The notes below the pieces were generated by a model that saw only the letters and a list, made by a program, of their open reading frames with translations, did no database searches and was not told the DNA's origin. This document shows, one piece after another, positions 1-64,000 of a DNA stretch of 64,000 nt; the stretch's first letter is position 1, and each line of letters begins with the position of its first letter. Made by a program: the position numbers and the translations under genes. The stretch lies in IMG/VR virus record IMGVR_UViG_3300032245_001860, positions 62,001 through 126,000 of that record. One strand, given 5' to 3'.

Positions 1-626
1 AAAACATTTCTCCAAGCAGATGAAATAACTATAGTAGGATTTACTTCTTCAACTATTTGATTTAATAGTTTGATTTTATCTTTTTGAATATATTTTGAAA
101 GTTTGCCTTGATCAAAATCTTCTGGATGTTTCATTATATGTAAATGCGGATCTGTATTTAAAACTCCATCACAATCCAAGAATAACATTTTTGTTTGAGA
201 TGCATAAAGTTTAGAAACAGCTTCTAAAATATGTTTTTTGCCATCCCATAAAATTTCAGGAAGATCATTTACATCAAACCATTTTAAAGCTTCACAATCA
301 CTATCAGCTACTGGCTCTTTGTCATCTTTGTATTTGTAAGCATAAATATCGCAAAATCTTCCGTCTGATTCTGATTTGAACGATTTTTCAATTGTGTGTA
401 GTTTTTTCTTTTTAAGCTTAAGATGAGTTTCTTCTTTGATTTCTCTGACAGCTGCTGATTCTGATGACTCTCCTGATTCTATTTTTCCACCAGGTATTGC
501 ATATTTTGTTGAAGTTTTTTGCTCTAATAAAACTTCAACTTTGTCATCTTCTTTTCTAAATACAATAACACAAGCTACTGATTTGCTGTCACTCATTGTT
601 CCACTTTGAGCTATTTTGTACCACAT
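1..626 (-). CDS. MWYK-tagged NUDIX hydrolase fused to a HAD (HAD_SAK_2-like) domain; runs off the window edge and is absent from the ORF track
   Basis: Manual translation from ATG at 626: MWYKIAQSGTMSDSKSVACVIVF...IPGGKIESGESSESAAVREIKEETHL (Nudix box GX5EX7REUXEE), then MLFLDCDGVLN...IVISSAWR (HAD DxDGV motif I and SSxWR). Confidence 0.85.
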   Translation of the reverse strand, partial: MWYKIAQSGTMSDSKSVACVIVFRKEDDKVEVLLEQKTSTKYAIPGGKIESGESSESAAVREIKEETHLKLKKKKLHTIEKSFKSESDGRFCDIYAYKYKDDKEPVADSDCEALKWFDVNDLPEILWDGKKHILEAVSKLYASQTKMLFLDCDGVLNTDPHLHIMKHPEDFDQGKLSKYIQKDKIKLLNQIVEEVNPTIVISSAWRNV

Positions 627-635
627 GCTAATTTT

Positions 636-661
636 ATTCTGCCTTACTTGCTTTTTTTCTT
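636..661 (-). promoter_or_regulatory. candidate SigH-like late promoter AAGA-N17-AGAAT
   Basis: Same spacing as the AGGA-N17-AGAAW motif upstream of other tagged genes; 9 nt before the ATG at 626. Confidence 0.45.
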
Positions 662-696
662 GTTATTGTGTATTATCTAATTTGAGGTGATATAAA

Positions 697-1305
697 ATGT
701 TTGTACCAGAAAGCAGATCCTGGAAAGAATTGTTTGTTTATGAAAGCAATTTGATAGATCCACAACCAGGCTATATAGGAAACTCTCCTGGTTGTCCGAT
801 GTTTGAAAATCACATGAATGCTATTAATTTTTGCCTAAGTAATGGCTGGGAGTTAAATGAAAATACTCCACTTGACATACATAGATTTTTAACTCGTGGC
901 ATACCTTTTTTTGAAGATCATAATTCATCAGGTAAATATAGAACAGTGGATGTTTGGATTGGCCATGATTTATGTCCTAATCCTATTTTAATTCCTAATC
1001 TTATGAATCAATGGTTTAAGATTACCAATAAAATGATGAATAGTTTTATTAACAAATGTGGCAATGAATCAGAAGCTCGTAAAATAGCTTGGATTTCGCA
1101 TCATATTTTTGAAACCATACATCCTTTTATAGATGGGAATGGAAGAACTGGTAGGCTTTTATTGGCCAAAATTTTACATGATTTAGGTCATGATCCAATT
1201 GTTGTAAGATTTGATGATAGATTTGAATATTATGATGCTATTCAAAGTTTTAGAGATCAATATTGGACTGGCAAGCAATTCATAATTACTGACTTCGAAA
1301 TGTAA
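697..1305 (+). CDS. Fic/Doc family protein (AMPylase-like)
   Basis: Intact Fic motif HPFIDGNGRTGR; GAGGTG RBS upstream. Confidence 0.9.
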   Translation: MFVPESRSWKELFVYESNLIDPQPGYIGNSPGCPMFENHMNAINFCLSNGWELNENTPLDIHRFLTRGIPFFEDHNSSGKYRTVDVWIGHDLCPNPILIPNLMNQWFKITNKMMNSFINKCGNESEARKIAWISHHIFETIHPFIDGNGRTGRLLLAKILHDLGHDPIVVRFDDRFEYYDAIQSFRDQYWTGKQFIITDFEM

Positions 1306-1332
1306 AAAACCGGGGTTTTTCCCCGGTTTTTT
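1304..1332. terminator. bidirectional intrinsic terminator
   Basis: aaaaaaccgggg-ttttt-ccccggtttttt between convergent genes. Confidence 0.85.
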
Positions 1333-2407
1333 ATAAGATTCTTACTGGTCCTGAAGATAAGTTGCTTGATGGTGTGCTTGGTGAAGAAATATTTTCATTT
1401 TCATTTTTTTCACCACCTGTAAAATCTTTTACTTTATCTTTGACAAATTTACCAGCTGTTCCAATTTTTTCTTCAATAGCTTGTACTAAATTTTCAAGCA
1501 TACCCTTGTCTTTATTGTCAAGATTCATTTTTTCAATTTCTTTTAATAGTTCAGAAGATTTTTCCACAAGTGTATTTGCAAGATTAATATCTATTTGCTC
1601 TAATGCATCTGACATTTTAGATATTTTATAAGATAAATCTTTTGATTGGAGATAAGCTTTTCCAGTGTTAGAAATATTTCTATACCAAAGATCTTCAGCG
1701 CCTTTTGTAAGTACATTTCCAGCCCCACCAGTTAGACTTCCAACTAATGCTCCAATTGGTCCACCTATAACACCACCAGCTGCACCCCCTGCTAAAGCAC
1801 CAGTAAAAAACTCTCTTAAGTAACCCGGCATTTCTTCTTCAATATTTCCTCTTATTGCCAGTTTTTGAGTTTTTGCATTGTAAACTTTTCTGAAATTAAT
1901 ATTACAAGCAGTTTTTACTGTTTCTTTGCCTTCATCAAACTTTTTCATTCCTTCTTTTGCCAATTCTTTAATTTGATCTGTAAGTTGAGAAACTGTTGGT
2001 GATGGTATTAATTTATTAATTACAACAAGAATTTTATCTAAATCAGTTTTATTTGATTGATAGACTTTATATGGGCCCTGTGAAGATTCAAAGAAATCTA
2101 AGGCATAATTTGCACCCATATCAACAAGCCAACCTACTCCGAAACCCTTAAGAGCAGACCCAGGATTAACTTTCACTTTGGTGGGAAATTTCTTAACCAA
2201 TTCTTCTGTTAATTTTTTGCCCCCAGCTAATTCCAAAGCTCTGTCTGCAGCTTCATCGCCAACTATTCTTTCTCCAGTTTCAATTTGAGCAGGAGTTTGA
2301 GCAAGCTTTATGTATTCTTTATTTAATAAATAAGCTTCAAGGTGATATTCTTGTGCATCCAAGTCATCAATAAGTTTTGCTAATTTTATAAGTTGTTCGT
2401 TTTTCAT
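1331..2407 (-). CDS. hypothetical protein with N-terminal KLA tag and glycine zipper; putative virion/ejection protein
   Basis: 358 aa; starts MKNEQLIKLAKLIDDLDAQEYHLEAYLLNKEYIKLAQ; GALAGGAAGGVIGGPIGALVG glycine zipper. Confidence 0.6.
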   Translation of the reverse strand: MKNEQLIKLAKLIDDLDAQEYHLEAYLLNKEYIKLAQTPAQIETGERIVGDEAADRALELAGGKKLTEELVKKFPTKVKVNPGSALKGFGVGWLVDMGANYALDFFESSQGPYKVYQSNKTDLDKILVVINKLIPSPTVSQLTDQIKELAKEGMKKFDEGKETVKTACNINFRKVYNAKTQKLAIRGNIEEEMPGYLREFFTGALAGGAAGGVIGGPIGALVGSLTGGAGNVLTKGAEDLWYRNISNTGKAYLQSKDLSYKISKMSDALEQIDINLANTLVEKSSELLKEIEKMNLDNKDKGMLENLVQAIEEKIGTAGKFVKDKVKDFTGGEKNENENISSPSTPSSNLSSGPVRIL

Positions 2408-2410
2408 ATC

Positions 2411-3661
2411 TTAAAACATCTGAATGAATTTATTTATTATAGTAGTTTGATCATTAATTGGAACATTGTCTGCTTGCAATTTGTGTTTCAATTCACTTAA
2501 TGATTTATTATAGTTTTTAGTTCTTGTGTAAAGTGAATATCCATAACCCAAATACATCTTGATATCTGTAGGTTTATTTATTGTTTGTACTGGCGCTTTA
2601 CTTGACATTTGATCTGAAGTTTGTTTAGATAAATTTGTTGGCTTAGACTTTGGCTTCAATAATGATTTTTGTAACTCTTTCTTAAGTGCTCCAACAAATT
2701 GCATAAACTGCATATATTTAAATTGATTTTCAGAACTTGTAGGATTTCTCAACCAGACATATTTTTTAGTAAGGTTAGGATTATTCAATATTTCTCTATT
2801 TGAGATAAATTTATTTTGTTGCATGATTGGCTGCAAATCATTTATGGCTTTTTTTACATCGGGATCTGCAGATGCTAATAACTGATCTATATTTGCTGAT
2901 AATGAATAGTCATTCTCAGCAATTTGTGTCTTGAAATCATCTTTTTCACCAGTATATCTCAGATAAGAATCAATGCCTTGTCTCCCAAGAGAAGACAAAC
3001 TTGCTGTTGCATATAATGCACCACCAATGCCTTTAGTGATAGGAAGAGGAATAGAAACTAAAACAGCTGCAATTGCAAGTAAACAAACTTCTATAAACTT
3101 AGCTCTTTCTTCTGCATCATTCCAAATTTGATTAAACTTACCAGCAGATATCAAGTCTATATATTTTGCAATATCTTTTCTTGACTGATAGAGATTAATT
3201 ACAATTCCCAGCAAAGGTAAGAATTTTACAAATCTTGCAAGTCCTGGAATTTTTGTAGCAATTTTTGCTAAGAATCCCTCAGCTTCTGCAGCTTTGGGAC
3301 TTTTTTTAGCAATATCAGCAAAAGTCTTTAATTTTGAAAGATGTTCACGAGCATCTGCTGCACTTCCAGCTGCATCCAATACATCAAATCCTGCGAATGC
3401 TCCTGCTTCTATAGCACCTTTTGCTCCTGATGATAGATTACTTTTTTGCAGATAATTAAAAGGCATTTTGATAGCATTGCCAATTGCTGTTTCTGCAATA
3501 TCATCATTCTGAATCCATTTTTGATTACTTAGTCCCAAACCATTATTTGCTGCAAATCTTTTGTTGACTAATTTCTCATAGAAATCAGCTTGTTCATAAA
3601 ATCCGTAGGAATCACACAATTCCGCATAGGATATACAATTTTGGGCAGAAAGTCTAATCAT
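2411..3661 (-). CDS. hypothetical protein with tag-like N-terminus and hydrophobic helices; putative virion/ejection protein
   Basis: 416 aa; AELCDSYGFYEQADFYEKLVNKRFAA resembles the tag of 8264-9616; hydrophobic segments FLPLLGIVINL and CLLAIAAVLVSIPL. Confidence 0.6.
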   Translation of the reverse strand: MIRLSAQNCISYAELCDSYGFYEQADFYEKLVNKRFAANNGLGLSNQKWIQNDDIAETAIGNAIKMPFNYLQKSNLSSGAKGAIEAGAFAGFDVLDAAGSAADAREHLSKLKTFADIAKKSPKAAEAEGFLAKIATKIPGLARFVKFLPLLGIVINLYQSRKDIAKYIDLISAGKFNQIWNDAEERAKFIEVCLLAIAAVLVSIPLPITKGIGGALYATASLSSLGRQGIDSYLRYTGEKDDFKTQIAENDYSLSANIDQLLASADPDVKKAINDLQPIMQQNKFISNREILNNPNLTKKYVWLRNPTSSENQFKYMQFMQFVGALKKELQKSLLKPKSKPTNLSKQTSDQMSSKAPVQTINKPTDIKMYLGYGYSLYTRTKNYNKSLSELKHKLQADNVPINDQTTIINKFIQMF

Positions 3662-3673
3662 AATATTTCAAAT

Positions 3674-3699
3674 ATTATAAAAATAATTGCTTGGAACCT
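3674..3699 (-). promoter_or_regulatory. candidate late promoter AGGT-N17-ATAAT
   Basis: Variant of the AGGA-N17-AGAAW motif upstream of the 3661 start. Confidence 0.4.
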
Positions 3700-3704
3700 T
3701 CAAA

Positions 3705-4166
3705 ATGACACAAAGAGATGCATACGAGTTGTTTTTTCCTTTGATAGAAAATTCAGGAAAAACATTTCACAAATCTTCATTAGTTTATGCAGAATTGGCT
3801 AAGGGTGGAGAGTTTATTGAAACTTGGACTAATGATGGACTGGAAACAACTAATTATGCAAACGCTGGAGATTTTATTGTCCAAAATCTACAAACAGAAA
3901 ATCTCGAAAAATATGTTGTGCCACCTGATATGTTTAAGTCAAGGTATAAGTTTTTTTACTGGCACGATAATGGAGCTATCTGTATACCTTTAGGGAAAGT
4001 TAGAGCTATACAATATATTGGTGAAGATACACAGTTCATTGCTAAATGGGGCAGATTGATGATTTTAAAGACTGGTGATTTTATTGTATCTCCAGCGCCA
4101 GATTTTCAAGAAGTATATAGAATAGCAAGAAAAGAATTTTTTGAAACTTATGAGGAAGATTTGTAA
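3705..4166 (+). CDS. hypothetical protein, PGDYG-like, with two internal repeats
   Basis: Repeats NAGDFIV...EKYVVPPDMFKSRY and KTGDFIV...EVYRIARKEFFETY; ATG at 3705 preferred to TTG at 3687. Confidence 0.6.
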   Translation: MTQRDAYELFFPLIENSGKTFHKSSLVYAELAKGGEFIETWTNDGLETTNYANAGDFIVQNLQTENLEKYVVPPDMFKSRYKFFYWHDNGAICIPLGKVRAIQYIGEDTQFIAKWGRLMILKTGDFIVSPAPDFQEVYRIARKEFFETYEEDL

Positions 4167-5254
4167 TGTGGTACAAAACAGCTAAATATGGCTATATTGA
4201 TGTCCAAAAATATTTTGAAGAACAATTAGGATATGAATTAAATTTCAAAATTGAAGATTATTTAGAATATATAATAAAAAAATCTTCCAAAATTGTTCAT
4301 GGTATGATGCGCATTGATTTTGATAAATTGAATAATGAACTTCAAAATTCTCCTCTTAATTTCTTAATCAAAAGATTCGGATCTATGGAAGAATTGACTG
4401 AAGGTAATAGAGAAGGTATTGGTGCTTGGATACCATCTATGAAATATTTACTTCTAATACCTCAATTTCCAGCACAAGTTTTATTTAAAATTGTTGATGT
4501 AGCTATGCACGAACTTGCACATGCTCTGGATAAAAGAGCAGGAAAATACCCAGATGATAAATATTTTCTTATACATTTCAAAGCATTAGCTCCAATTATC
4601 ACACAGTATATGACACAGTTTTATAATGATAAAAAACAATTACTTTCAAGAGAACAAGTTTGGGATATTTTTCTAAATCTTATTGTGAAAGATATGAATA
4701 TTCCAGACGACAACAAACCTTTAAGAGAATTCCAAAGGACATTTACTGAATCTCTATGGTCGCAGAAAAAAGATGAGATATTGGATCATATTTTTGCTAT
4801 CGTAAGTAATAATCTAACTGACGATGATTCAATGGAAGAATTTTTACTCAGAGAATATTATAACTTGCCTGTAGAAGCACCAGCACAATTAAACTCATTG
4901 TATAGAGAATCATTGCCTCAGAGATTATTAGAATCTGCATTTCTTGCATATATCTCACATATATATTCTCCAAACCTAATACAAAAACTCAATCTTGATC
5001 CTAATGAAAGAAACCCTGAAGTAATTTTCAAAAAATTACAAGAAATGATTCCTGGTTTTGTGAATGCTGAAATGAAAGAAGATTTTATCAACTACATAAG
5101 GATAGAAATTTTTGATGATGTTGATAATTCTAATATATTAATTGATGGAAAAAATTTCTTGAAATCAATTAGAAAGAAACACATAAGAAGACAAGCTTAT
5201 AAAATCTTAAATGAAAATTTTGCAGAGTTTAAAAAATTAGTAGAAGCTTTGTAA
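4166..5254 (+). CDS. MWYK-tagged zincin-like metallopeptidase domain protein
   Basis: N-terminus MWYKTAK; HELAHALD (HExxH) plus downstream YYNLPVEAPA with a candidate third-ligand Glu. Confidence 0.65.
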   Translation: MWYKTAKYGYIDVQKYFEEQLGYELNFKIEDYLEYIIKKSSKIVHGMMRIDFDKLNNELQNSPLNFLIKRFGSMEELTEGNREGIGAWIPSMKYLLLIPQFPAQVLFKIVDVAMHELAHALDKRAGKYPDDKYFLIHFKALAPIITQYMTQFYNDKKQLLSREQVWDIFLNLIVKDMNIPDDNKPLREFQRTFTESLWSQKKDEILDHIFAIVSNNLTDDDSMEEFLLREYYNLPVEAPAQLNSLYRESLPQRLLESAFLAYISHIYSPNLIQKLNLDPNERNPEVIFKKLQEMIPGFVNAEMKEDFINYIRIEIFDDVDNSNILIDGKNFLKSIRKKHIRRQAYKILNENFAEFKKLVEAL

Positions 5255-5263
5255 AATATATAT

Positions 5264-5803: not shown

Positions 5804-5822
5804 TTCTATGTATAATAGAGAT

Positions 5823-6731: not shown

Positions 6732-6757
6732 AAAATCCCCCATAAGGGGGATTTTTT
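6730..6757. terminator. bidirectional intrinsic terminator
   Basis: aaaaaatccccc-ataa-gggggatttttt between convergent genes. Confidence 0.85.
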
Positions 6758-8182: not shown

Positions 8183-8216
8183 AATTGATACCTCTAAATA
8201 AGTTATACCAAAATAA

Positions 8217-8245
8217 AAAAAGATCTTCAATAAGAAGATCTTTTT
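8217..8245 (-). terminator. intrinsic terminator
   Basis: aaaaagatcttc-aataa-gaagatcttttt just downstream of 8264-9616. Confidence 0.7.
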
Positions 8246-12570: not shown

Positions 12571-13607
12571 TATGATAACTTTCCTCTTGCATAGTCTAAA
12601 AGTGGTTGCAATTCAGGCGTATTTGAATTGTGTAAATAATTAGTCAAGATTGTATTCAAACTTGCTATTGACGATGGACTTAAATTATTTATGTAATATG
12701 CCCATCTTGCAGGGGTTATTCCAGCTCCTAATCTTGCAAAAGCAGTGAATGAAATATTTATTGTATTAGTTGACATATTTGCATCAATTTTTCTTGTGTA
12801 ATTAGATTTTATAGATGCTTGCCCTAATTCTAAATATCTATCACCCACCAATAATGAACAGTTGCCCTCAACAGGAATAGAATCATAAGAATCATGTCTT
12901 GCAAATATTTCAAAGCTTCCTGTCAAGTTGTGTGTTTGTGGAGAGAAAAATGGGTATTGATATCCAGTATTTGCTATGTATACTTCTGAATAACCAACAT
13001 TGATATTTATTGTTCCGTTTTTAATATAATATTCATTGCCGTCAATATAAAATCTGACATCGTAATTTTTAGCAGTTCTTGCAATGAAATCTTCACCACT
13101 ATTATTTGTAACTGGCAAATCTATAGTGAATTTGGTGTCGTAACTACAATTATAACCTAAAGTACATGAAACATTACTTCCAATTGTTATTTGAGCAGAA
13201 GTAAGTAAATTTTTATTAGCTATTGTCAATCCAAGTTGCGCAAGAATATATTGAAGCCATTCTAAATTGTCAACATTGTAAATATCTTCTACTGGATAGA
13301 AAAAGAAATTTAACAGCAAATAATAATCATCAATTAATAAATCAAATACATCTTTATATGTAACTGTTGTAGTTTCAAGATCCTTAATTATTAAAGCATC
13401 ACCATTAACTGTAATTTTATCTTTTCTGCCAAGCTGATCTATAACTAATGTTCCAGCCTCACCTTGAATTAAGTCTTTAGGAGATATAGATAAGTCAGAA
13501 TTGTTGGTTACACTATTTGCAAGTATATAAGATGTACCAGAAACATTAGTAAGTGCTGTTTTTAGAAAATACCAAGACCCGATATATCTTGAGTCTATAA
13601 TGGCCAT
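12570..13607 (-). CDS. putative tail-tube-like structural protein
   Basis: Beta-rich, Thr/Asn-rich; YYIKNGTININV...PFFSPQTHNLTGSFEI pattern; paralog of its neighbour. Confidence 0.4.
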   Translation of the reverse strand: MAIIDSRYIGSWYFLKTALTNVSGTSYILANSVTNNSDLSISPKDLIQGEAGTLVIDQLGRKDKITVNGDALIIKDLETTTVTYKDVFDLLIDDYYLLLNFFFYPVEDIYNVDNLEWLQYILAQLGLTIANKNLLTSAQITIGSNVSCTLGYNCSYDTKFTIDLPVTNNSGEDFIARTAKNYDVRFYIDGNEYYIKNGTININVGYSEVYIANTGYQYPFFSPQTHNLTGSFEIFARHDSYDSIPVEGNCSLLVGDRYLELGQASIKSNYTRKIDANMSTNTINISFTAFARLGAGITPARWAYYINNLSPSSIASLNTILTNYLHNSNTPELQPLLDYARGKLS

Positions 13608-42720: not shown

Positions 42721-42748
42721 AAAAAGAGGGGAGAAATCCCCTCTTTTT
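42721..42748. terminator. bidirectional intrinsic terminator
   Basis: aaaaagagggga-gaaa-tcccctcttttt. Confidence 0.85.
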
Positions 42749-43217
42749 ACGTATTTGATAAACCTTTTCTAATCTCTCTTAATTTATTGGCTACAGCATC
42801 TTGAGTTGCATTTTCTAAAGTACCATTCATATCAAGTGGATCAACTTCAAAATGAAAATCTCTACCATTAATATGATTTCTCGCAATAGCTGTAATTTGT
42901 TCAGGTGTAGGAGGAGAATGTATATCAACGCTCCATTCTCCATAATTAGAAACTCTTATAGCTCCAGTCAAAGACATAAATGGAACAACATAATCAGAAT
43001 ATCTACTTCCTTGAGATTCTTCTGGTTCATCCATAACAGATTCAATATTTCTATGATCTAATGATCTTTCATATCCACCCTCAGAATAATCAAGAAATTT
43101 ACCAGAGCTTAAGACATATCCAGCTTTGACTGGATCATTTGTTTCACCATAAAACTCTAAAGCTTCTTTTTCTTTGGGATGAATGCCAAAATATGATTGA
43201 GCTAATTTGTACCACAT
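42747..43217 (-). CDS. MWYK-tagged hypothetical protein
   Basis: MWYKLAQ; AGYVLSSGKFLD...DHR...GAIRV...PTPEQ. Confidence 0.7.
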   Translation of the reverse strand: MWYKLAQSYFGIHPKEKEALEFYGETNDPVKAGYVLSSGKFLDYSEGGYERSLDHRNIESVMDEPEESQGSRYSDYVVPFMSLTGAIRVSNYGEWSVDIHSPPTPEQITAIARNHINGRDFHFEVDPLDMNGTLENATQDAVANKLREIRKGLSNT

Positions 43218-52791: not shown

Positions 52792-53355
52792 ATGCAAGAT
52801 AACTATGAACATATTAATAAGCTTGTAGAGTTGTGTAAAAATGATGACTCTGATGCATTATTTCAACTATACGATTTCTACAAGCCATTATTGCTTTCAT
52901 CAGTAAGTCGTTGCATATATAAAAATCCAAAGCTTTCAAGATATAGAGAAGATATCTTCAGAGAGTCAGTGTTTGTACTGAAAAAGTTGATTGATCAATA
53001 CGATCCAACTCTTACTTATTTTTCTTACTTTTTATCAACCAGAATAGATATTAATCTTTTTAGATATGTAACTGACAAATACCAAACAGATGAATACTTT
53101 ATTGAAGACTATTGCCCAGACGAAGATTCATATGATCCGTTTAATAAAATAAATAGTGCAATTTCAATTCATGCAGCTTTGACAAAATTGAATGAAAAGC
53201 AACGTGAAGCTATTGAATTGTATTTTTTTGAAGGATTAGATCAAGAACAAGCATCAATTAAATTAAATATCACCCAAAGTTCTTTTTCAAAAAGATTGCA
53301 ACGAGGCTTATCTAAGATGAAAGAACTACTGGGTGATGATTTCTTACTTGACTAA
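52792..53355 (+). CDS. sigma-70 family sigma factor (regions 2 and 4, ECF-sized)
   Basis: ALFQLYDFYKPLL, YDPTLTYFSYFL, LNEKQREAIELYFFEGLDQEQASIKLNITQ; TATAAT 6 nt before the ATG. Confidence 0.85.
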   Translation: MQDNYEHINKLVELCKNDDSDALFQLYDFYKPLLLSSVSRCIYKNPKLSRYREDIFRESVFVLKKLIDQYDPTLTYFSYFLSTRIDINLFRYVTDKYQTDEYFIEDYCPDEDSYDPFNKINSAISIHAALTKLNEKQREAIELYFFEGLDQEQASIKLNITQSSFSKRLQRGLSKMKELLGDDFLLD

Positions 53356-56160
53356 TCTTCTGTGATTATATACTGATGCTTTTTTGTCAGATGTAAATGG
53401 ATCTTTAATATCATCAGGCTGTTCTGTTTCCATTTTTATATTGGAACCAGGTTGAGGTTTAGTAGGTTCAAGCCCAGGAAAATGTCCAGGAGCTCTTTTT
53501 CTACTATTAGGATCATTAGGATCTTCGCCTTCTTTCCAAGTCCAAGTGCCTTCTGGAATTTGCTTACCAGTATAAACAGGCATCATTTCATCAAACTTTC
53601 TTCCGCCAGGTATTTTTTCAGTATAGCCAATTAATGATTTAGTGATATCAGCAATATCTTCAGCTGTTGGTTTTTCCGGTTTAGCATCATCATCTTTCTT
53701 TTGTTGTTTTGCTCTTGTAGGATCATCTAAATCAAGAACATCACTTGTCAATAAACCATTAGCCACTGCATCAGCAACCTTGCCAAAATAATCTTTCAAG
53801 TATCCTTCTAAAACTGAGTCAGAAACATCACTAACATCAAATATCATCATTGTTCCAGATTTAATTAAATCTTCTTCAACTCTTTTGAGTTCATTTTCTA
53901 ATTCAATTTTCTTTGAATAATTAAGATCTCCTAATGACTCTAATTCCTTCTTGATTTGATTTTTTCTTTTAATCAAGCCTCTTCTAAAATCTCTTTTACC
54001 AGCGACAGTAAATATTTCATGGAATATAATTTCCAGTCTGTTTCTTTGTCTTTCAAGAATTTTTAATACAGCTTCTTGTGGATCAGGAATATCAATAGTA
54101 GTTCCATCTGGCTTTCTAATTTTACCAAAATTTTCTTTTTTGAATTCTGCTGAGGCATCTTCCATCATCAATCTTCGAACATTTGTACCGCCAGACATAA
54201 GATGGATTTTTTGATTGACAATATCTTGAAGCCATTGTTCTTTTGCTGCTTCGTAAACTGTTTTAGAAACCATTAAATTTGAAAGTCTATTTCTAAATAT
54301 TTCAGATAGATAAGGGATGTCACCGTGAACTCTTGCATACATTTCAGAAGGATTAATTAAGTAAGCTTCTTCTTTTGTAACTTCTGGATTAAGTTCTTCA
54401 GATGGAGCCATTATAAGATCGCCAGATGCAAGATAATGAAGAGCGTGAGCAATTTCATGTCTTCTTGTTGCTTCTGTAAATTTGGTATGTGAAATGCCCA
54501 AGTTTTCAGCTAATTGCTTGTGATGTTCTAATGAGTCATATGAATCAGTTCTTATGATGATTGCTGGCACATTTTCTCCAGATTGAGTTGGAAATCTTGG
54601 AACAAATAAGCCTCGCCATAGACCATCAACAAAATCAATGTCATTAATTTGCAATTTTGTAATTTTGTTTTTGTTTAAGAATGACTTGAGAGTATTGCTA
54701 TCAAATTCGAGTAAAGTTAATTTTTCAGCGTATTTTATAAGATCTTCTTTTGAAATAGTTGTATATTGTCTTTCTTGCTCCATTTTATCAAGATAACTTG
54801 TTGCAAATTGAGTGAACATTTGCTTAGATGATTTTTGTATTTCAAGTTCTCTTCTTTCAAAATCTGAAGCGTTGGCAGGTATGGATACAGATTCTACTGA
54901 TGGATCATAATCATTATTCCAAGTCTTTTCAATAGGATCTATTTTCTTAATCACACCCTCTTTAATTGCTTTAGATATGACATCTAACCCACTACTCAAG
55001 ATAGTATTCTTTGCTTGATTGCTTTTTGACGTTAGGGCGGCTAAATTAGGAAGTTGATTTCTTGCACCTGCTTTGAAATTATCTAATTTTTCAGGATTTT
55101 CTTCAAGATATTTCAACATGGTATCAACAGTAGCAAATCCTTGGTATAACCACAAATCCCTAATTTCATCTCCTTGTTTTTCACAGTATTCCTTAAATTC
55201 AGGATCTTGTCTTAATTGCTCAATATGAAAATCTTTGATATCCCAATCATATGAATATGTGTAAATTAAATATATAAATGATTCTAATAAAAATTGTTGT
55301 TCAGGATTTGTCTTCTTGATATAAAAATAAGTTTCAACTTGGCTGTAAGTATCAGAGTAATTAAATAGTTCCTTGACTGTGTATTCATCAAAAATACCAA
55401 TACAAGCTTCTATCAATGACATAAATTGATCAGGCTTGAGTCCACTTCTTGCATATGACACCATAAATGGTCTCAATCTGTTAGCAAAATCTGTATTTAT
55501 ATCAGTGTTATTAAGAAAATTTATTACGCCTTGATGGCTTTGGAATCTTTCCAAAAGTGGTTTTTCTGAAATTGCTCTATCAAGAATTTCTTTTCTGTCA
55601 ACATCATTAGGATTTACCCCAAATTTCTTAACATCACCATCTCTTATCATATACATCAAGGTGGATTCATTGATTTCTACACCTTTTGAGGAAAGTAAAT
55701 TTAATGTCTTAAAGCCTATTGAAGCTAAACTCTGGAAGCCATACTCCATTACTGTAGCACTTCCAGCCCCATCGCCTATCTCAATTGATCCATTATCTTT
55801 TTCTTTTAATAATTGAGTTATTTTGCCTAAGTAATCTAATATAAGAAAAGTTTCTGAATCTGGCGTACCAATCTTCTTCAAGTGGTTATCCACAAACTTT
55901 ACAATTGATTTTCCAAAAAATTCTAAATCTGAATGATATTTTGATATGTTGCCTTCACACATTTTAAGATAATTGATTTGCGTGACATATTTAATAAGCT
56001 GCGACATAGAGTAAACTGTAGGCATTTTATTAGGATCATTAAAGTTAGCACCTTTTAGTGTTTCTTTGAATGATCCACCCCATTCAAACTTAGGAGATGA
56101 CAATACATCCCATGCATCAGCTGCTTCTACTATTCTTTTTGATCGTTTGTAGTTCCACAT
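53344..56160 (-). CDS. large tagged protein with a zincin-like metallopeptidase domain
   Basis: 938 aa; MWNYKRSKRIVEAA; RRHEIAHALH plus YLINPSEMYAR; ends KKASVYNHRRLVK. Confidence 0.65.
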   Translation of the reverse strand: MWNYKRSKRIVEAADAWDVLSSPKFEWGGSFKETLKGANFNDPNKMPTVYSMSQLIKYVTQINYLKMCEGNISKYHSDLEFFGKSIVKFVDNHLKKIGTPDSETFLILDYLGKITQLLKEKDNGSIEIGDGAGSATVMEYGFQSLASIGFKTLNLLSSKGVEINESTLMYMIRDGDVKKFGVNPNDVDRKEILDRAISEKPLLERFQSHQGVINFLNNTDINTDFANRLRPFMVSYARSGLKPDQFMSLIEACIGIFDEYTVKELFNYSDTYSQVETYFYIKKTNPEQQFLLESFIYLIYTYSYDWDIKDFHIEQLRQDPEFKEYCEKQGDEIRDLWLYQGFATVDTMLKYLEENPEKLDNFKAGARNQLPNLAALTSKSNQAKNTILSSGLDVISKAIKEGVIKKIDPIEKTWNNDYDPSVESVSIPANASDFERRELEIQKSSKQMFTQFATSYLDKMEQERQYTTISKEDLIKYAEKLTLLEFDSNTLKSFLNKNKITKLQINDIDFVDGLWRGLFVPRFPTQSGENVPAIIIRTDSYDSLEHHKQLAENLGISHTKFTEATRRHEIAHALHYLASGDLIMAPSEELNPEVTKEEAYLINPSEMYARVHGDIPYLSEIFRNRLSNLMVSKTVYEAAKEQWLQDIVNQKIHLMSGGTNVRRLMMEDASAEFKKENFGKIRKPDGTTIDIPDPQEAVLKILERQRNRLEIIFHEIFTVAGKRDFRRGLIKRKNQIKKELESLGDLNYSKKIELENELKRVEEDLIKSGTMMIFDVSDVSDSVLEGYLKDYFGKVADAVANGLLTSDVLDLDDPTRAKQQKKDDDAKPEKPTAEDIADITKSLIGYTEKIPGGRKFDEMMPVYTGKQIPEGTWTWKEGEDPNDPNSRKRAPGHFPGLEPTKPQPGSNIKMETEQPDDIKDPFTSDKKASVYNHRRLVK

Positions 56161-56309: not shown

Positions 56310-57023
56310 GTGGTTGAAAAAAATACATCCGATGACATGATTTATAATTGGCGCAATGAATTGCGTTCACATAAAGATGGCGTAGTTGTTGTAGCCAGTT
56401 CCCAAGCAGCTCAATATAAAGCTCAAGGTTACAATAAATCCGAAGTGGTTGAACTTCTTGCAGCAGACAATTTTGATATTGATGTTGCAAACAGAGTGGC
56501 TTCTAAGTTGTTTGATTCACCAACTGTTGCCATTAAGGAAACAGTTCAAGTTGCAGTAGTTCCAACAAAGTATGATGATTGTGTTCCAGTGATTGAAAGA
56601 TCCTTGGAAAAATACAGCGCAAAAGAATTTGTAAAGAGACTTTGTACTGGACCTCATTCTATTGTAAAAACAGATGATAAAGGTATTCAAACTTGGCTCA
56701 GAGCTGCAGAATTAGCAAAGACTAATTCAAATGGCAGAACAAATTTACATGCTGCACTTAAACCTTGGGTAGAAGAAGCATTATTAAATTCTGTTTTAGT
56801 TGCACAATCCGAAAAGCCTCAAGTAAAAACTGCTTCTAAAAATAAGTATGTTGTAAGTAACAGAAAAGGCACTGCAGAAGTTGACCTTGCAAATGCTACT
56901 TCAACCAGCGAAAAATTTACAAAAGGCAACTATGCTGATTTTGGTTTAGCTGACGAATATATGGTAGGTGCAGCAGATTCTGTTTCCCCTTATCAAAGAT
57001 TGAAAAGAGCCTTAAAAGACTAA
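56310..57023 (+). CDS. hypothetical protein, putative head-associated
   Basis: GTG start after AAGGGGAG; contains RVAS and VKTAS motifs. Confidence 0.65.
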   Translation: MVEKNTSDDMIYNWRNELRSHKDGVVVVASSQAAQYKAQGYNKSEVVELLAADNFDIDVANRVASKLFDSPTVAIKETVQVAVVPTKYDDCVPVIERSLEKYSAKEFVKRLCTGPHSIVKTDDKGIQTWLRAAELAKTNSNGRTNLHAALKPWVEEALLNSVLVAQSEKPQVKTASKNKYVVSNRKGTAEVDLANATSTSEKFTKGNYADFGLADEYMVGAADSVSPYQRLKRALKD

Positions 57024-57089: not shown

Positions 57090-57776
57090 ATGTCAGATAA
57101 AAATGAAGAAATTGTTGATGTAATTGTACCTGCGTCAGAAAAAGTAGTAACTGGGCCTGCTAAGTTATTCAGAGAATTGAAGGAAACAGATAAACCATAT
57201 CACCCTTTACCTCCTGACAACATGAATGACATTTCTTATCCTCAATTTTTAGAACCAAGGTGCTCAATTTGTTCTTCCCCATTTAGAGATTTAGCAGAAC
57301 ATGTATTTCTTGAAAGTGGTAAGAAACCCCAGTCTGTCATTCAATTCTTTGCTCATTATTTTGATGCTAAACTAAATTGGATGCAGATTAACACTCATAT
57401 GGAGCAACATTGTGATTTCAAAAAAATCTCAACATCTGGTTTAAAAAATTATGAGCAAAGAGAAGAACTTATTGCTCCTTGGATTTTTAGAGAACACCAG
57501 TTAGCTCTCACTGCTCTTTTAGTTGAACTTGATGATGTAAGGGGCATGGATTGTTCCAAAAACAATGACTTAAAGCTTAAAAGAGCATCTATGGTTGAAA
57601 AGTTAATTAGTAAAATCTTATATGTAAAAGAACAAAGAGATAATCAAGGTGTTTTTGCTATAAACATATTTGAAATTCTTGTCAAATTGCACGAACAAAT
57701 GGAAAGTGAAGCAGATAAGAAAATTATCAGAGATGAGATGCAATTTTTAAGACAAAAAATACAAGCTGATAACTAA
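57090..57776 (+). CDS. putative terminase small subunit
   Basis: CSIC...HMEQH Zn/HTH-like N-terminus, helical C-terminus; TAATG-coupled to TerL. Confidence 0.55.
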   Translation: MSDKNEEIVDVIVPASEKVVTGPAKLFRELKETDKPYHPLPPDNMNDISYPQFLEPRCSICSSPFRDLAEHVFLESGKKPQSVIQFFAHYFDAKLNWMQINTHMEQHCDFKKISTSGLKNYEQREELIAPWIFREHQLALTALLVELDDVRGMDCSKNNDLKLKRASMVEKLISKILYVKEQRDNQGVFAINIFEILVKLHEQMESEADKKIIRDEMQFLRQKIQADN

Positions 57777-59893
57777 TGAGAAAACCTAACCTTCAAAAAA
57801 CTCAACAAAATGATGCCAAATCTCAACTTCTTCTACAAGCATCTGAAGTTGAGAAGTTTTTTAAGGAATCAGAATATGCTGGAGAATTTTCTGATGATAT
57901 TGTTCCTGCAACAAGAGCTGAAGTAATTCCTCCACCAGCACCTGAAAAATCAAGATTCAATCCTGATAAAATTGTTGATATCATCACATTTATTGAGCAT
58001 CCTTATTTTTGCAACCTCAAGCCTTATCCTTGGCAGAAACTTATCCTTAAGTGTTTTTATATGGGTCAAGAGGGTAATACAAATCTTGTAATAAATAATG
58101 TCAAGCAAGAAACAGGATGCGATGGTTGTGTGTGGAGTTATATCAAGGAAAATGAAGATCTTTTTTATAAATCCAGAAAGAACCAGAAACAAATAAAAAC
58201 AATCTTTTCAGTAGTTAATTCTCCCTGTCTAACATGTAACCGCTTGAATGATGAAGTAAGAAACGAAAGATATGAAGCTGCTAAAGAAGAAGCCACAAAT
58301 CCAGATGCCGAAAGACAAGTAGAAGAATTATCTCAAAGAGCAATACTTGATAATTTTGAAACAGAAAATGATCTTTTATACTCTGATGAATTTGATCCAA
58401 AGTTAAGAGTTCAAGTAAATGAAAAAAGCTCAAAAAGATACAAATTTCAAGAGTTAGTGTTAGTGCTTGGCAGACGTTCAGGAAAATCATTCTTAGTGTC
58501 TGCTATGGCTCTTTATGAACTATATAGGCTTATTTCTATGGGACATCCTCAATCAAGATATGGGCTGATGGAATTTGATGAAATAGTATTACTTAATGTA
58601 GCTCGTAATGAAGAACAGGCAAAGAAAGCAATCTTCTCTAAAATCAAACAAACGGTTTTAGCTTCTCCTTTTTTTCAACCTTACATTGGAAAAGATACAG
58701 AACTCGAAATGAGATTCTATACTGAAAATGATGTCAAAGAAAATGAAAGAAGAGCATCGAGAAACTTAAATCCTTTTGCTGGCTCTTTAGTTTTAAGATG
58801 TGGTTCAAGTAATGCTTCTGGTCTTGTAGGTCTTACTTGTTGGTGTATCATTATGGACGAAGTTGCAGCTATGGCAGGAGATAATCCTGACTCTGGTGTT
58901 GACTATGCTCTATATGATGATCTGAAGCCATCACTTGCTACATTTGGTAAAGATGGAAAGATGATGATGCTTTCCAACCCTAAAGGTCCGCTTGGATTGC
59001 TTTATGATTTACATGAAAATAGATTAGAAGACCCTGCAACTCTTGTAATGAGATTGCCCACTTGGTTAACTAATCCGAACATTGATAAAGCTTGGCTTGA
59101 TGATCAAAAAAAGAAAAATCCAGTTGAGTTTACTATGCAATATGGTGCTGAGTTTGGAGCTGCATCTTCAGACCCAATGTTTGATCAAGATTCTATCAAA
59201 AGAATGTTTTCTTCAATGAGAATGACACCAAGATTAGAATTTGCACAACCACAAGTTGATTATTACTGTCACTTGGATCCTGCAAGAACTTCAGACTACT
59301 ATGCCTTAGCTGTATCTCACACTGAAGAAATATATGGAACTGTGGGTCCCGATTTCAAACCACTTAAAAGAGTGGTTATTGATCACATTCATTTTTGGAA
59401 TCCGCAAACAAAAAATCAACCTATTTCTGAAAGAGAAGTTGAAAATTATGTAATTGATTTACATAGAAGATTTAAATTTAAACAAGTTAGTATTGATCAA
59501 TGGAATTCTCAGTCTTCTGTAATAACTCTTCAAAGCAGAGGTGTGCCAATTATTGAAAGACAGTTCAATAAAGAATACAAAGAAAAGATTTACACAGAAC
59601 TGACACAGCTTATCAGAGAAGATAGAATAGATATTTATGACCTTTCAAGTGGTGCATATTTAGATGCGCAAAACAATAAACATAATTTGAATGAAATAGA
59701 AGAAGCTAAAATTCAATTTTTATTCTTACAAAAGAAATGGAAAGGTAAAAGATACTACATTGAAGCTTTATCGGGATACAAAGATGATATTTGTGATGCT
59801 ATAGCTGCTGTCAGTTATGAAGCCTTAACAAATAAAATTATCACAAGATCTCCAAGAAATAGAATGGTCAGTTTGGGTGGCAGGTATAGATAG
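57776..59893 (+). CDS. terL: terminase large subunit
   Basis: YPWQ, LGRRSGKS Walker A, IIMDEVA Walker B, LSNP coupling motif, HLDPA and KDDICDAIA nuclease motifs. Confidence 0.88.
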   Translation: MRKPNLQKTQQNDAKSQLLLQASEVEKFFKESEYAGEFSDDIVPATRAEVIPPPAPEKSRFNPDKIVDIITFIEHPYFCNLKPYPWQKLILKCFYMGQEGNTNLVINNVKQETGCDGCVWSYIKENEDLFYKSRKNQKQIKTIFSVVNSPCLTCNRLNDEVRNERYEAAKEEATNPDAERQVEELSQRAILDNFETENDLLYSDEFDPKLRVQVNEKSSKRYKFQELVLVLGRRSGKSFLVSAMALYELYRLISMGHPQSRYGLMEFDEIVLLNVARNEEQAKKAIFSKIKQTVLASPFFQPYIGKDTELEMRFYTENDVKENERRASRNLNPFAGSLVLRCGSSNASGLVGLTCWCIIMDEVAAMAGDNPDSGVDYALYDDLKPSLATFGKDGKMMMLSNPKGPLGLLYDLHENRLEDPATLVMRLPTWLTNPNIDKAWLDDQKKKNPVEFTMQYGAEFGAASSDPMFDQDSIKRMFSSMRMTPRLEFAQPQVDYYCHLDPARTSDYYALAVSHTEEIYGTVGPDFKPLKRVVIDHIHFWNPQTKNQPISEREVENYVIDLHRRFKFKQVSIDQWNSQSSVITLQSRGVPIIERQFNKEYKEKIYTELTQLIREDRIDIYDLSSGAYLDAQNNKHNLNEIEEAKIQFLFLQKKWKGKRYYIEALSGYKDDICDAIAAVSYEALTNKIITRSPRNRMVSLGGRYR

Positions 59894-59916: not shown

Positions 59917-60945
59917 ATGTCTTCAAAGAATATTAAAACTGCTCAATTTGGTGGCGTTGGTGGAGGTGGAAATGGTTCACCTTTTGCACCTGGAAAAAGC
60001 CCGATTGGATCTGGTGGAAAAAACCCAGGAGGTTATGAAGTTAACTCTGACTGGGACGAAAACAAAACGCTTGAAAAAATGCTGTCAAAAACCCATGAAG
60101 ATATGGATCTGTCTGATAGAAATTTCGAATCAAGATTAACACCACAACATAAATTTTTTGAAGAAAACAAAGCTTATGTCTTAACTCCAGCTGAAAGATT
60201 GAAAGAAAAGTTCAGAGCTGAATTACACGCTTACAAAAAATCTTTAGAAGAGCATGCTGACAGTTTACATAAAAATTCAGTCAAATATATTCAAGAACAT
60301 TACAAACTGACTGACGATGACTTACAAACAATGGAACAAAGATTACATCAAAGAAGACATTTTGATGATTCCAAGAAAAGACAATTCAAATATGAAGATC
60401 AAGTTCCAGATCAAATAAAGCCAGAAAGAGCACATCCAGTTTTATCAGATACACAAATGAATCGTATTGCTACCATTGTCATGAGAGACAAAATTACTCA
60501 AGAAAATGACGAAGATGTAGAACAAAGAAACATTTTTGATAAAAAGAGATTTACTTACCCTCCTATTGGAAGAACACCAGTGCTTACTCGTGGTGATGAA
60601 TTAGGTCAATATTTTGAAGATGTGTTACATGAATACACCCCAGAGTCAAATGGTGCTATGGAAGTCGGAGATCTTGTAACAGATGAAACCAATCCTGATT
60701 ACGAACCAAATATTCATCCTCGTAATGAAATAGCCAATGAACCGGCTGATGATGAATTAGATGGCATAAATGTATTTCAAACATTAGAAGGCAATTTGCA
60801 TAATAAAAAAGCACCTGATAATCAATTTGACAGAAATAATATGTCATCAGATAAAGAAAAATTTGGTGACGAAGATATGGGTGTTGAAGATGTTTACAAA
60901 GGTTCTGCTTGGTTTGGGTCTCATACTCCAGCTTCATTTGGATAA
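59917..60945 (+). CDS. tagged hypothetical acidic protein
   Basis: MSSKNIKTAQFGGVGGGGNG; AGGT-N18-ATAAT upstream. Confidence 0.65.
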   Translation: MSSKNIKTAQFGGVGGGGNGSPFAPGKSPIGSGGKNPGGYEVNSDWDENKTLEKMLSKTHEDMDLSDRNFESRLTPQHKFFEENKAYVLTPAERLKEKFRAELHAYKKSLEEHADSLHKNSVKYIQEHYKLTDDDLQTMEQRLHQRRHFDDSKKRQFKYEDQVPDQIKPERAHPVLSDTQMNRIATIVMRDKITQENDEDVEQRNIFDKKRFTYPPIGRTPVLTRGDELGQYFEDVLHEYTPESNGAMEVGDLVTDETNPDYEPNIHPRNEIANEPADDELDGINVFQTLEGNLHNKKAPDNQFDRNNMSSDKEKFGDEDMGVEDVYKGSAWFGSHTPASFG

Positions 60946-62622: not shown

Positions 62623-62630
62623 GAGAAATT

Positions 62631-63122
62631 ATGCCAATTCCAATTAAACCAGTTCATTCATTAGATTTGCATGCTGAAATTTTTGATTCACCCTCAATGG
62701 AAGGCTTAGGACTGTCAGACATCCAAATCCAACTTTTGGGTATGACCGCAGCACCTAAAAAAGAAGCATCTGTAAAATTAAGCGAAAGATACATTTCTAT
62801 GCTTAAGGATATTGATAAAAACATTAACGAAGTTGTTACTGCTGCAAATGCTGCTGTTAATAACAAAGATGGAAAAGTTTGCACAGTTCCAGGTGAAATC
62901 TCAGACAATGATCTTTTAGCACTTAAAACTGCAGGATTGATCAGTGGTTATGGCAGATCTGTTTCCTTGACAGATAAAGCAAAATTAGCTTTGAGAGATT
63001 TTTATCTTAGCACAGATACAACTAATGAATTCAGAAAATCAAGAACAAAAGAAAAATTTGATTTAAATGAAGCAAGAACAGTGAAGGTTTCAAACACAAA
63101 ATTTATACGTGTTGCAACTTGA
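62631..63122 (+). CDS. hypothetical protein
   Basis: AGGAG RBS; ends FIRVAT-TGA in frame with the next domain. Confidence 0.7.
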   Translation: MPIPIKPVHSLDLHAEIFDSPSMEGLGLSDIQIQLLGMTAAPKKEASVKLSERYISMLKDIDKNINEVVTAANAAVNNKDGKVCTVPGEISDNDLLALKTAGLISGYGRSVSLTDKAKLALRDFYLSTDTTNEFRKSRTKEKFDLNEARTVKVSNTKFIRVAT

Positions 63123-63506
63123 CTGAGCAAATCTGACGAACTGGATGTTCGCTTTATAGCAAAAGATGATCATTCAAGGGCAAAAGGCTTAATGCATGCA
63201 AAGCCCTTAAATGAACTTGAAGTAGCATATTTTATATTTCCAACAGAAGATTGTCATTCATTTTGGAATAAAAATGTAGATTTTTCATTAACTTTAGCTT
63301 TTTTAGATAAAGATAATGAGATTGTTGATTTCAAAGACTTAGAAAAGCAAAGTCCTAAACTTGTTAGCCCAGATTCAAACAGAGTTAAATTTGTTGTAGA
63401 AGCTAATAAAGGATTATTCGAAAAACTTGGAATTAAAACTGGGGATAAGCTTATCCTTAAAAATAATAAACTTATAGTTGAAAAAAACCACAAAACAAAA
63501 CCTTAA
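63123..63506 (+). CDS. DUF192-like protein (start uncertain)
   Basis: LDVRFIAKDDHSRAKGLMHAKPL...FIF...SFWNKNVDFSLTLAFLD...FVVEANKG...IKTGD; the domain begins upstream of ATG 63192. Confidence 0.75.
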   Translation: MSKSDELDVRFIAKDDHSRAKGLMHAKPLNELEVAYFIFPTEDCHSFWNKNVDFSLTLAFLDKDNEIVDFKDLEKQSPKLVSPDSNRVKFVVEANKGLFEKLGIKTGDKLILKNNKLIVEKNHKTKP

Positions 63507-63532
63507 AGGAAATTGAGCCTTTTTTTTAGAAG
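63507..63532 (+). promoter_or_regulatory. candidate SigH-like late promoter AGGA-N17-AGAAG
   Basis: Motif upstream of the 63597 gene. Confidence 0.55.
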
Positions 63533-63596
63533 GTTTTAATAAACCCCGACTATGTATTTAGGGTGCTGTTTGAAATCTTGAGGAGAAAAAATAATT

Positions 63597-64000
63597 ATGG
63601 CTGATAGAATTTTCCCAAACAGATATCAAGAGGAACCTCTTGATTCTGACTTGGTCTACCAAGCAATTAACTGGGATAACTTTAACACCAAACTCGCAGA
63701 AGTTCAAAATGGTGTCAACGTACCAGAACTTCCAGCTGAGTTCAAAGAAGTTCTTGCTAAAAAGAAATCTGAAGACATGCCAGAAGAAGTTGAAGAAATG
63801 TTCAAAAACAAGAACAAAAGAGATGATGCAGATGCTGATGATCTTTCTGATGTTCCTGAGCAACTTCGTGAATTTGTAAAGAAGAAGCAAGACAAATCTA
63901 AGGGCAAGAAGTCCGAAGTAAAAGATGAAGAAGTCAAACCAGTTGAAACTGAAGAAGCTGGTTGGAAAAATGGCAAAAATATGAAGAAAGCTAATACTTT
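63597..64000 (+). CDS. partial charged hypothetical protein, possibly an abundant virion or scaffold protein; absent from the ORF track
   Basis: GAGGAG RBS; MADRIFPNRYQEEPLDSDLVYQAINWD...MKKANT, open to the window end. Confidence 0.75.
   Translation, partial: MADRIFPNRYQEEPLDSDLVYQAINWDNFNTKLAEVQNGVNVPELPAEFKEVLAKKKSEDMPEEVEEMFKNKNKRDDADADDLSDVPEQLREFVKKKQDKSKGKKSEVKDEEVKPVETEEAGWKNGKNMKKANT

Follow-up and report, generated by a model that had tools for sequence, protein, structure and literature searches.

N-terminal tags on unrelated proteins of a phage-G-like jumbo phage: a candidate head-assembly address and processing label

Which proteins of a jumbo phage travel with its DNA has had to be learned by virion proteomics, phage by phage, and capsid targeting sequences are, to our knowledge, well defined only in T4, where the sequence carried by IPI-III and Alt is removed by the prohead protease gp21. 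The stretch analysed here, a window of 64,000 nucleotides from IMG/VR record IMGVR_UViG_3300032245_001860 (bases 62001-126000 of the 315,852-bp JGI contig Ga0335278_1137246, sample 3300032245), raises the question of whether a comparable address might be read from genes alone. A first-pass annotation of its letters had noticed that about ten proteins with unrelated bodies begin with one of two N-terminal tags, a short one (class A) or a helical one of about 35 residues (class B), both mostly ending in K/R-x-A, and had proposed a portable label that loads diverse enzymes into the head for injection and is cleaved after that tripeptide. The patterns described below favour, at a rough probability of 55%, the reading that the tags direct proteins to head assembly and mark them for processing across a large clade of phage-G-like jumbo phages.

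The source is, as judged from its major capsid protein, an uncultivated phage-G-like jumbo phage, an assignment made because this 284-aa protein matches phage G gp27 (7e-90 against PDB 6wkk; 46.8% identity to Bacillus phage G). The window is AT-rich (31-37% GC) and densely coding, with no near DNA-level relative among GenBank phages, and its bulk is a replication and nucleotide block encoding PolIII alpha, ribonucleotide reductase, dUTPase, a RecA-like protein, RecJ, a clamp loader and SbcCD (identities read from translations of the open reading frames (ORFs), with additional search support for PolIII alpha).

Two classes of N-terminal tag

The six class A N-termini named in the first-pass annotation are all present in the sequence exactly as quoted, each at its start codon:

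1..626, minus strand: class A tagged gene with a NUDIX + HAD body, MWYKIAQ at 606-626; cut by the window start, 300 aa in full
4166..5254, plus strand: class A tagged gene, 362 aa, body without family match, MWYKTAK at 4166-4186
42747..43217, minus strand: class A tagged gene, 156 aa, MWYKLAQ at 43197-43217; body conserved across many contigs
53344..56160, minus strand: class A variant, a 938-aa ORFan, MWNYKRSKRIVEAA at 56119-56160; adjoins the packaging genes and is divergently transcribed
13607..16198, minus strand: class A/B variant, an 863-aa ORFan, MFNYKKIKLA at 16169-16198
59917..60945, plus strand: tagged head-module gene directly after the terminase gene, MSSKNIKTAQ at 59917-59946, then a Gly-rich linker

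In its class A form the tag is a bare N-terminal heptapeptide, reading MWYKxAQ here and MNWYKKAQ, MKIYKIA or MKRLIKKAS in other lineages, and the usual architecture is the tag, then a flexible linker, then an unrelated body; phage G gp10 has the same layout as the protein of 59917..60945, a tag followed by a Gly-rich linker. The M-W-Y is invariant within the family of the 156-aa MWYKLAQ protein, which AlphaFold2 (AF2) models well, with a predicted local distance difference test (pLDDT) of 83, and for which a fold search of the PDB returned no match.

Within the window the statistics are uneven. The tripeptide [KR]xA falls in the first 12 residues of 10 of 72 proteins, against 4.8 in control windows of the same proteins, a weak and about twofold excess (P about 0.02); a loose N-terminal regular expression is matched by 10.3% of proteins and by 3.5% of internal Met-anchored windows; and K[LITFVM]AQ occurs eight times anywhere in the window's proteins, as opposed to 1.5 times in shuffles, five of the eight within the first 45 residues. 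For an external test MWYKxAQ was back-translated and the resulting DNA pattern scanned in IMG/VR and GTDB genomes. The total of 56 matches in IMG/VR is close to the number that we estimate for a random 31-bit pattern in so large a collection, but 37 of them coincide with the first start codon of an ORF (50 aa or longer), and these ORFs encode at least a dozen unrelated bodies, whereas among the first 120 matches in GTDB genomes only six start an ORF, most of these ORFs being implausible (Fisher 7e-18 against IMG/VR). Synonymous sites vary among the MWYKxAQ genes (codon 3 is TAC in 19 and TAT in 23, codon 6 takes all four GCN forms, and codon 5 varies), so selection acts on the tag peptide and not on the DNA.

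These figures bear directly on whether the tags might be a product of chance, of compositional bias or of a translation-start effect in an AT-rich genome. The merely twofold enrichment of bare [KR]xA would agree with such an origin, as would the Lys-rich N-termini common in AT-rich genomes, yet it is scarcely credible: a Trp codon (TGG) at position 2 is not produced by AT bias, synonymous codons vary, the placement at ORF starts is not reproduced in cellular genomes, and the lineage variant MNWYKKAQ is matched 13 times where about 0.05 matches would be expected by chance (our own estimate). The class A tag is certainly not chance, and chance is refuted for class B as well, leaving it as a possible source only of single K-x-A occurrences of the weakest kind (MVRKYAS at 32535, for one). 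The proposal that unrelated proteins share an N-terminal tag thus stands in the sense that the tag is genuine, is portable and N-terminal, and is subject to selection at the protein level; as a signature, K/R-x-A does recur in the tags, but the bare tripeptide is only about twofold enriched and the invariant residues of class A are M-W-Y, so it can be only part of the signal.

The MWYK families were found in no cultivated carrier among GenBank phages, and for the ADP-ribosyltransferase (ART) family the only cultivated matches are the "NUDIX" proteins of Tunturi_5 and Mx1, with the tag outside the matching region. Several MWYK genes in other contigs have a AAGGATTATATA-like box upstream, and in six of the loci fetched for the analysis (L007, L011, L014, L023, L036 and L047) MWYK-tagged genes are preceded by a AAGGATTATAT-like box, some 25-30 nt ahead of the start codon. 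A promoter link for the tagged genes was nonetheless dropped: the box is not enriched in the window (21 matches against 15 expected), and inspection of upstream regions by eye found no motif common to tagged and head genes.

The four class B N-termini are likewise found exactly as first quoted, and the sequence directly to the left of the window holds a fifth class B gene (432 aa):

1331..2407, minus strand: class B tagged gene, hairpin tag aa 1-37 (2297-2407), ending KLAQ
2411..3661, minus strand: class B tagged gene, hairpin tag aa 1-39 (3545-3661), ending KRFAA
8264..9616, minus strand: class B tagged gene, 450 aa, hairpin tag aa 1-34 (9515-9616), ending VKTAA
62170..62622, plus strand: class B tagged gene of the head module, hairpin tag aa 6-38 (62185-62283), ending VKLSQ

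On profile evidence class B is a real family: a hidden Markov model seeded on these four tags and iterated over all fetched loci gathers 25 members, 22 of them N-terminal and three C-terminal. The rough consensus runs L-x-K/R-I/L-A-x-x-L-D-x-x-G-x-Y-x-x-A-D, then about 6-8 residues, then K/R-x-A/S-Q; the class B tag thus closes with the element of which class A consists. The tag of the 8264-9616 protein is nearly invariant in orthologs that are 57-94% identical overall and is the most conserved part of the protein; AF2 predicts for it, with low pLDDT throughout, a helix at residues 3-15, a turn, a second helix at 21-31 and then about 20 disordered residues. A word-based search with the class B tag alone retrieved orthologs only and did not reach across families. 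At the C-terminus, not the N-terminus, a class B-like hairpin is found on an 85-aa protein just left of the window (L002:2927-3184, minus strand) and on two large unknown proteins encoded directly upstream of the protease polyprotein in relatives (L132:1820-3592 and L110:935-3517). The idea that these two are portals with a C-terminal hairpin was rejected, since neither the portal of this phage nor any PHROG resembles them.

The head-protease polyprotein and the spread of the motif

The head module begins at the right end of the window with the large terminase gene.

57776..59893, plus strand: large terminase subunit, which opens the head module and carries no tag

Rightward past the terminase gene come a Mu-type portal, a 1405-aa protein, a 533-aa and a 223-aa protein, and the 284-aa major capsid protein. 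The prohead protease gene, whose location had been proposed as a check on the original idea, is the one that encodes the 1405-aa protein adjoining the portal: its residues 89-246 are 37% identical to phage G gp19, which is listed as a head maturation protease (PMC12484599), and it matches PHROG 18299, "head maturation protease", at 3e-16. With the capsid protein as bait, 80 related head loci were retrieved (57-100% capsid identity; 44 non-redundant), several of them on contigs that also bear MWYK tags. Across the 44 the protein is 833-2390 aa long, the protease being fused to a tail of 1100-2100 aa, and its gene lies between the portal and capsid genes; an N-terminal protease domain with a long C-terminal region is the architecture of a protease-scaffold, the scaffold role being putative.

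This polyprotein itself begins like a tagged protein. In 44 of 44 non-redundant loci it starts M-x(1-3)-K-x-A (MIYKTAN, MAIYKTAT, MAFTKRAS and MLIKTAT are examples, and this phage has MKKVAKG), a few close relatives reading G for A (MIKRGPSG). Nearly all have a second conserved site, [ILMV][KR]TA[SAG], 25-45 residues in and directly before the protease core, with no conservation of the sequence between the two, and in the core alignment each intact sequence (one free of inteins) has a [KR]xA[SQ] that follows the final conserved block of the core at a distance of 10-50 aa. At the matching positions phage G gp19 shows VKTAA ahead of its core and EKVAS behind it. Within the core a His and a Ser-Met-Gly are invariant (H63 and S114 in alignment A3) and are likely the catalytic residues. 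Six relatives (L096, L101, L102, L113, L131 and L141) carry an intein-like insertion with LAGLIDADG-type blocks directly after the Ser-Met-Gly, a kind of site that inteins favour, which suggests an active site.

The same motif runs through the remainder of the chain. When all 400 gapped dipeptides were ranked against composition in 43 polyproteins, the top place went to K.A (983 found, 564 expected; z 17.6), followed by R.A (490 against 250); the polyproteins are kin, so these z-scores overstate independence, yet the signal sits at many non-aligned positions. Among three-residue patterns of the a.bc type in the same proteins K.AS is found 209 times against 41, and R.AS, K.AQ and R.AQ stand near the top beside a few domain-specific motifs. 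The logo of 363 polyprotein sites reads phi(-2)-x-[KR]-[TVLI]-A-[SQ], phi being hydrophobic, with some 9-11 sites per protein spread along its whole length.

One could suppose from this that the motif is a protease site only and no address, and that tagged proteins stay in the cell to be switched on or off, or destroyed, late in infection. The match between the tags and the top-enriched motif of the protease polyprotein would suit such a timing device, and seven residues are very short for a docking signal. We regard it as unlikely all the same, since prohead proteases normally act inside the shell, and a mere cleavage site has no need of strict N-terminal placement (22 of 25 class B members, and class A at ORF starts). 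The loss of six or seven residues would hardly regulate NUDIX, GNAT and NlpC/P60 proteins alike, and wall hydrolases that lack signal peptides fit a virion-borne role best.

The converse supposition, that the motif escapes cleavage and serves as a repeated peptide for binding the shell, in the manner of an encapsulin cargo-loading peptide or the coat-binding helix-turn-helix of a scaffolding protein, with the polyprotein as a multivalent scaffold and each cargo protein bearing one copy, differs from the head-address reading only on cleavage. A short capsid protein (284 aa) with no delta domain, the succession of tag, flexible linker and body, the predicted helix hairpin of class B and the spread of sites along the whole polyprotein would all be in keeping with it. 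It nevertheless seems improbable, because the sites conserved on both sides of the protease core, even in the stand-alone gp19 of phage G, look like self-release sites, and a small Ala followed by S is a classic assemblin-type cleavage pattern (PMC4498786).

The tie of the tags to head assembly can be gauged from where [KR]xA[SQ] occurs in the genome. The left block comprises window positions 1-17160 plus 3.4 kb leftward (L002), with 24 proteins and 6659 aa.

This phage, head module: 29 observed, 6.0 in shuffles
This phage, head module without the polyprotein: 20 observed, 4.5 in shuffles
This phage, replication block: 15 observed, 7.4 in shuffles, a twofold excess
This phage, left block: 4 observed, 5.2 in shuffles
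Phage G, head module gp4-27: 15 observed, 4.5 in shuffles
Phage G, gp28-57: 3 observed, 1.5 in shuffles
Phage G, enzymes at 165-215 kb: 10 observed, 7.9 in shuffles

The four left-block copies all belong to tags, and the protein bodies there, whether tagged or untagged, have none, an absence that a late-acting cleavage device would also accommodate. That the motif might be just as frequent in shuffled or non-head proteins had been named at the outset as a finding that would undo the idea; the head modules of both phages are enriched (4-5 fold in this one) and the enzyme region of phage G is not, but the replication block of this phage has a twofold excess. The internal strings VKTAS, KKEAS, IRVAT and MKKAN are all present in the three head-module proteins for which they had been quoted:

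56310..57023, plus strand: head-module protein with internal VKTAS (aa 173) and NRVAS (aa 62)
62631..63122, plus strand: head-module protein with KKEAS (aa 44) after a disordered-looking N-terminus, and IRVAT (aa 160)
63597..64000, plus strand: 335-aa head-module protein that runs off the window, with six [KR]xA, five of them V-K-x-A, at aa 130-300, and MKKAN at aa 130

Their recurrence holds as a property of the group, by the regional counts, but not for any single site.

Short, basic-hydrophobic N-terminal recognition peptides are a feature of AAA+ machines, as in the N-motifs of ClpX, and the tag might accordingly be imagined as a docking peptide or degron for some other hub, such as the phage's own AAA+ unfoldase (22801-24411), ClpX-like machinery or a host factor, giving timed turnover or co-localisation of early effectors in a manner unrelated to the capsid. 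The window does encode an AAA ATPase (Pfam AAA, 4e-30) weakly similar to the ClpX-like gp258 of phage G, and many tagged genes are located well away from the head module and run in the opposite direction to the replication genes. Such a hub is nonetheless very unlikely, as it leaves unexplained the tag on every head-protease polyprotein, the motif that brackets the protease core, the enrichment in the head modules of two phages and the arrays of tagged genes beside capsid genes.

A putative route into the head

The bodies that follow the tags are relevant to what a head address would be for. In the window the tagged set consists of one NUDIX-HAD enzyme and nine proteins without a significant family match; eight of the ten count as ORFans in Pfam and PHROGs, and three found no relatives in a sequence search of the PDB. 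The earlier impression that recognisable enzymes lack the tag is correct for the replication and nucleotide enzymes but not in general, the first tagged protein being itself the NUDIX-HAD enzyme. Outside the window this genome also encodes a wall hydrolase of the NlpC/P60 type with an MWYK tag, 8 kb beyond the capsid gene, and a 171-aa protein with an MWYR tag directly before the portal, in a position conserved in relatives. Tagged bodies in other contigs, mostly single-domain proteins, include ART-PolyVal, PcfJ-like, GNAT, AAA_33/Zeta-like kinase, M23 peptidase, InPase and cREC_REC domains, and tagged genes often stand in tandem arrays: six in L008, five in L049 and, in L132, six with an MNWY tag that adjoin the capsid gene. 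In phage G the tag takes a form of its own (MKRLIKKAS, MKRLISKTAA, MSKKISRLKKTA), found on many head-module genes and also on the HGTS-type ART-like gp53 and gp251 and the ParB-like nuclease gp284. These bodies are of the effector and wall-hydrolase types expected of ejected proteins, and for a wall hydrolase that lacks a signal peptide carriage in the virion is the most plausible role.

Taken together, the core signal would be a hydrophobic or aromatic pair followed by K/R-x-A-(Q/S), presented either as a heptapeptide (class A) or at the end of a helix-turn-helix hairpin of about 35 residues (class B). This motif may be recognised by the protease-scaffold polyprotein or by the shell that it organises, and a protein with the motif free at its N-terminus would be co-assembled into the prohead. 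At maturation the protease would cut at K/R-x-A, before S or Q, and the cargo (NUDIX, ADP-ribosyltransferase, GNAT, kinase and wall hydrolases) would be freed inside the head and ejected with the DNA. That protease or shell recognises the motif, that a cut is made and at which bond, and that the cargo is packaged and ejected are steps that we infer. The label as first proposed is thus borne out in its portability, its selection at the protein level and its tie to head morphogenesis (44 of 44 polyproteins, module enrichment, arrays), but in its wording has to give way to a longer signal than the tripeptide. More tentatively, and with less confidence than we attach to the address itself, a herpesvirus-like polyprotein may capture its cargo as a pseudo-substrate, binding at cargo N-termini the K/R-x-A-S/Q motif that it later cuts in itself, so that cleavage specificity doubles as packaging signal and the full loaded and injected set of the clade could be read from genomes.

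The comparison with T4 and phiKZ made at first sight holds as analogy, but the protease family and the motif are different here. As in T4, a short N-terminal peptide is common to unrelated non-structural proteins, an ADP-ribosyltransferase among them; the peptide ends in a motif that also marks head proteins (processed in T4; here the candidate cleavage motif [KR]xA[QS]); and the presumed outcome is that enzymes are ejected with the DNA. The motif here is phi-phi-K/R-x-A-Q/S, however, where that of T4 is L/I-x-E, the protease is a gp19 homolog fused to a long tail and not of the gp21 family, and there is a second, hairpin-type tag. No gp21-type family came up when 14 protease cores were compared with Pfam (E up to 1), and the best relative remains phage G gp19 with PHROG 18299.

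In phiKZ and SPN3US an A-x-E-type propeptide motif goes with many cleaved head and ejection proteins (PMC10052503, PMC5694885). These phages resemble the present one in having a jumbo head with many accessory proteins and a cleavage motif enriched in N-terminal propeptides and multi-site proteins; they differ in clade, protease lineage and motif, and in SPN3US most head proteins are uncleaved and no universal short address label has been described.

With the T4 sequence, the herpesvirus protease-scaffold polyprotein pUL26 is the nearest mechanistic parallel. In pseudorabies virus its release and maturation sites are YLQA-T and VQA-S (PMC4498786), and on this analogy the cut here would fall between A and S or Q. 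Both systems have an N-terminal serine protease, predicted in the present case, fused to a long assembly protein, here a putative one, with a conserved His and Ser in the core. The herpesvirus release sites place Ala at P1 before Ser or Thr, and the candidate sites here, [KR]TA[SA] before the core and [KR]xA[SQ] after it, may do likewise. No sequence relation to solved assemblins is detectable, though, and the phage sites have a basic residue at P3, number about ten per protein, and share their motif with an N-terminal label on other proteins.

A comparison by function is offered by the polyvalent proteins and MuF-linked effectors of phages (Iyer et al. 2017, PMC5512222). Polyvalent proteins are predicted there to be packaged and delivered with phage DNA, and T4 Alt is given as an ADP-ribosyltransferase injected from the head. 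The repertoires overlap (ART-PolyVal, named for the class, PcfJ, InPase, kinases and peptidases) and the predicted role, acting at DNA entry, is the same, but polyvalent proteins join two to fifteen domains in one chain, anchored by MuF or a peptidase, whereas here separate small genes are each tagged. The cargo-loading peptide of encapsulins and the coat-binding helix-turn-helix of P22 scaffolding protein are alike in that a terminal peptide or hairpin with a flexible linker leads into an HK97-fold shell. Their signals are C-terminal and uncleaved, those described here N-terminal, and the encapsulin shell is non-viral, without portal or terminase, while this is a tailed phage with portal, terminase and protease.

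Several observations pull against the head-address reading, besides the twofold excess in the replication block. Enzymes reported in phage G particles (ClpP, ClpX, gp281 and gp265; PMC12484599) carry no tag. The family of the protease is unsettled: a profile of its core finds no relative in the PDB, solved assemblins included, and the Pfam scan of 14 cores gave only S78_2, at E 0.026, in two of them. Cargo tags mostly end A-Q and polyprotein sites mostly A-S, and no co-variation by lineage is visible between cargo tags and the polyprotein N-terminus. Class A conserves M-W-Y more than K-x-A, some family members reading MWYRIVLA, and so may be recognised differently from the internal sites.

What would be new in such a system? 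Capsid targeting and propeptide processing are known kinds of mechanism; the novelty would lie in an unusually clean signal, readable from genomes, with a cultivated relative. A literature search for the literal tag strings found nothing relevant, though it did not cover the 2020 phage G structure and proteomics paper, where an earlier description is possible, and the parts available of two Aravind-group surveys (on polyvalent proteins, PMC5512222, and on jumbo phages) mention no such label. If the reading is right, the injected arsenal of hundreds of uncultivated G-like phages, with its anti-defence enzymes, ADP-ribosyltransferases, NUDIX hydrolases and wall hydrolases, could be read from metagenomic sequence; the strategy would be an unlinked equivalent of that of the polyvalent proteins, many small genes with one common tag; and a tag of seven residues would be a practical handle for loading foreign cargo into phage heads. 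Since phage G is cultivated, the idea can be put to the test at once.

Neighbouring features

Other features of the window and its surroundings were recorded along the way. An untagged Fic/DOC family protein (697-1305, plus strand; Pfam 1e-14) is encoded between the tagged NUDIX gene and the class B genes. Two tandem paralogs at 6756-8230 (minus strand) share an early I-I/V-M-L-T-N-T-A block and look glycosyltransferase-like by eye, and three more at 44804-47319 (minus strand; 275, 287 and 279 aa) share the start MVD(N/G)(Y/H)(R/K)VV, the one tested having no Pfam match. Within the head module a UDP-galactopyranose mutase gene occupies 60962-62083, and the portal (L059:10001-12343) has a C-terminal DUF559 / MTES_1575 restriction-endonuclease-like domain at about aa 650-770. 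Outside the window, on its right and a few kb beyond the capsid gene, a precomputed Pfam match to RuBisCO_large falls on a 391-aa product cut by the locus end (L059:21823-22343, about 142.4-142.9 kb of the contig).

Overlapping ORFs of 271 aa and 575 aa (the latter with a TTG start), with a 50-aa ORF between them, lie at 24411-26806 (plus strand) upstream of a primase-like gene, an arrangement that suggests a mis-called, split or interrupted gene. The gene immediately before them, that of the AAA ATPase in the replication block (22801-24411, plus strand), also matches PHROG 8638, a group of unknown function, at 1e-145.

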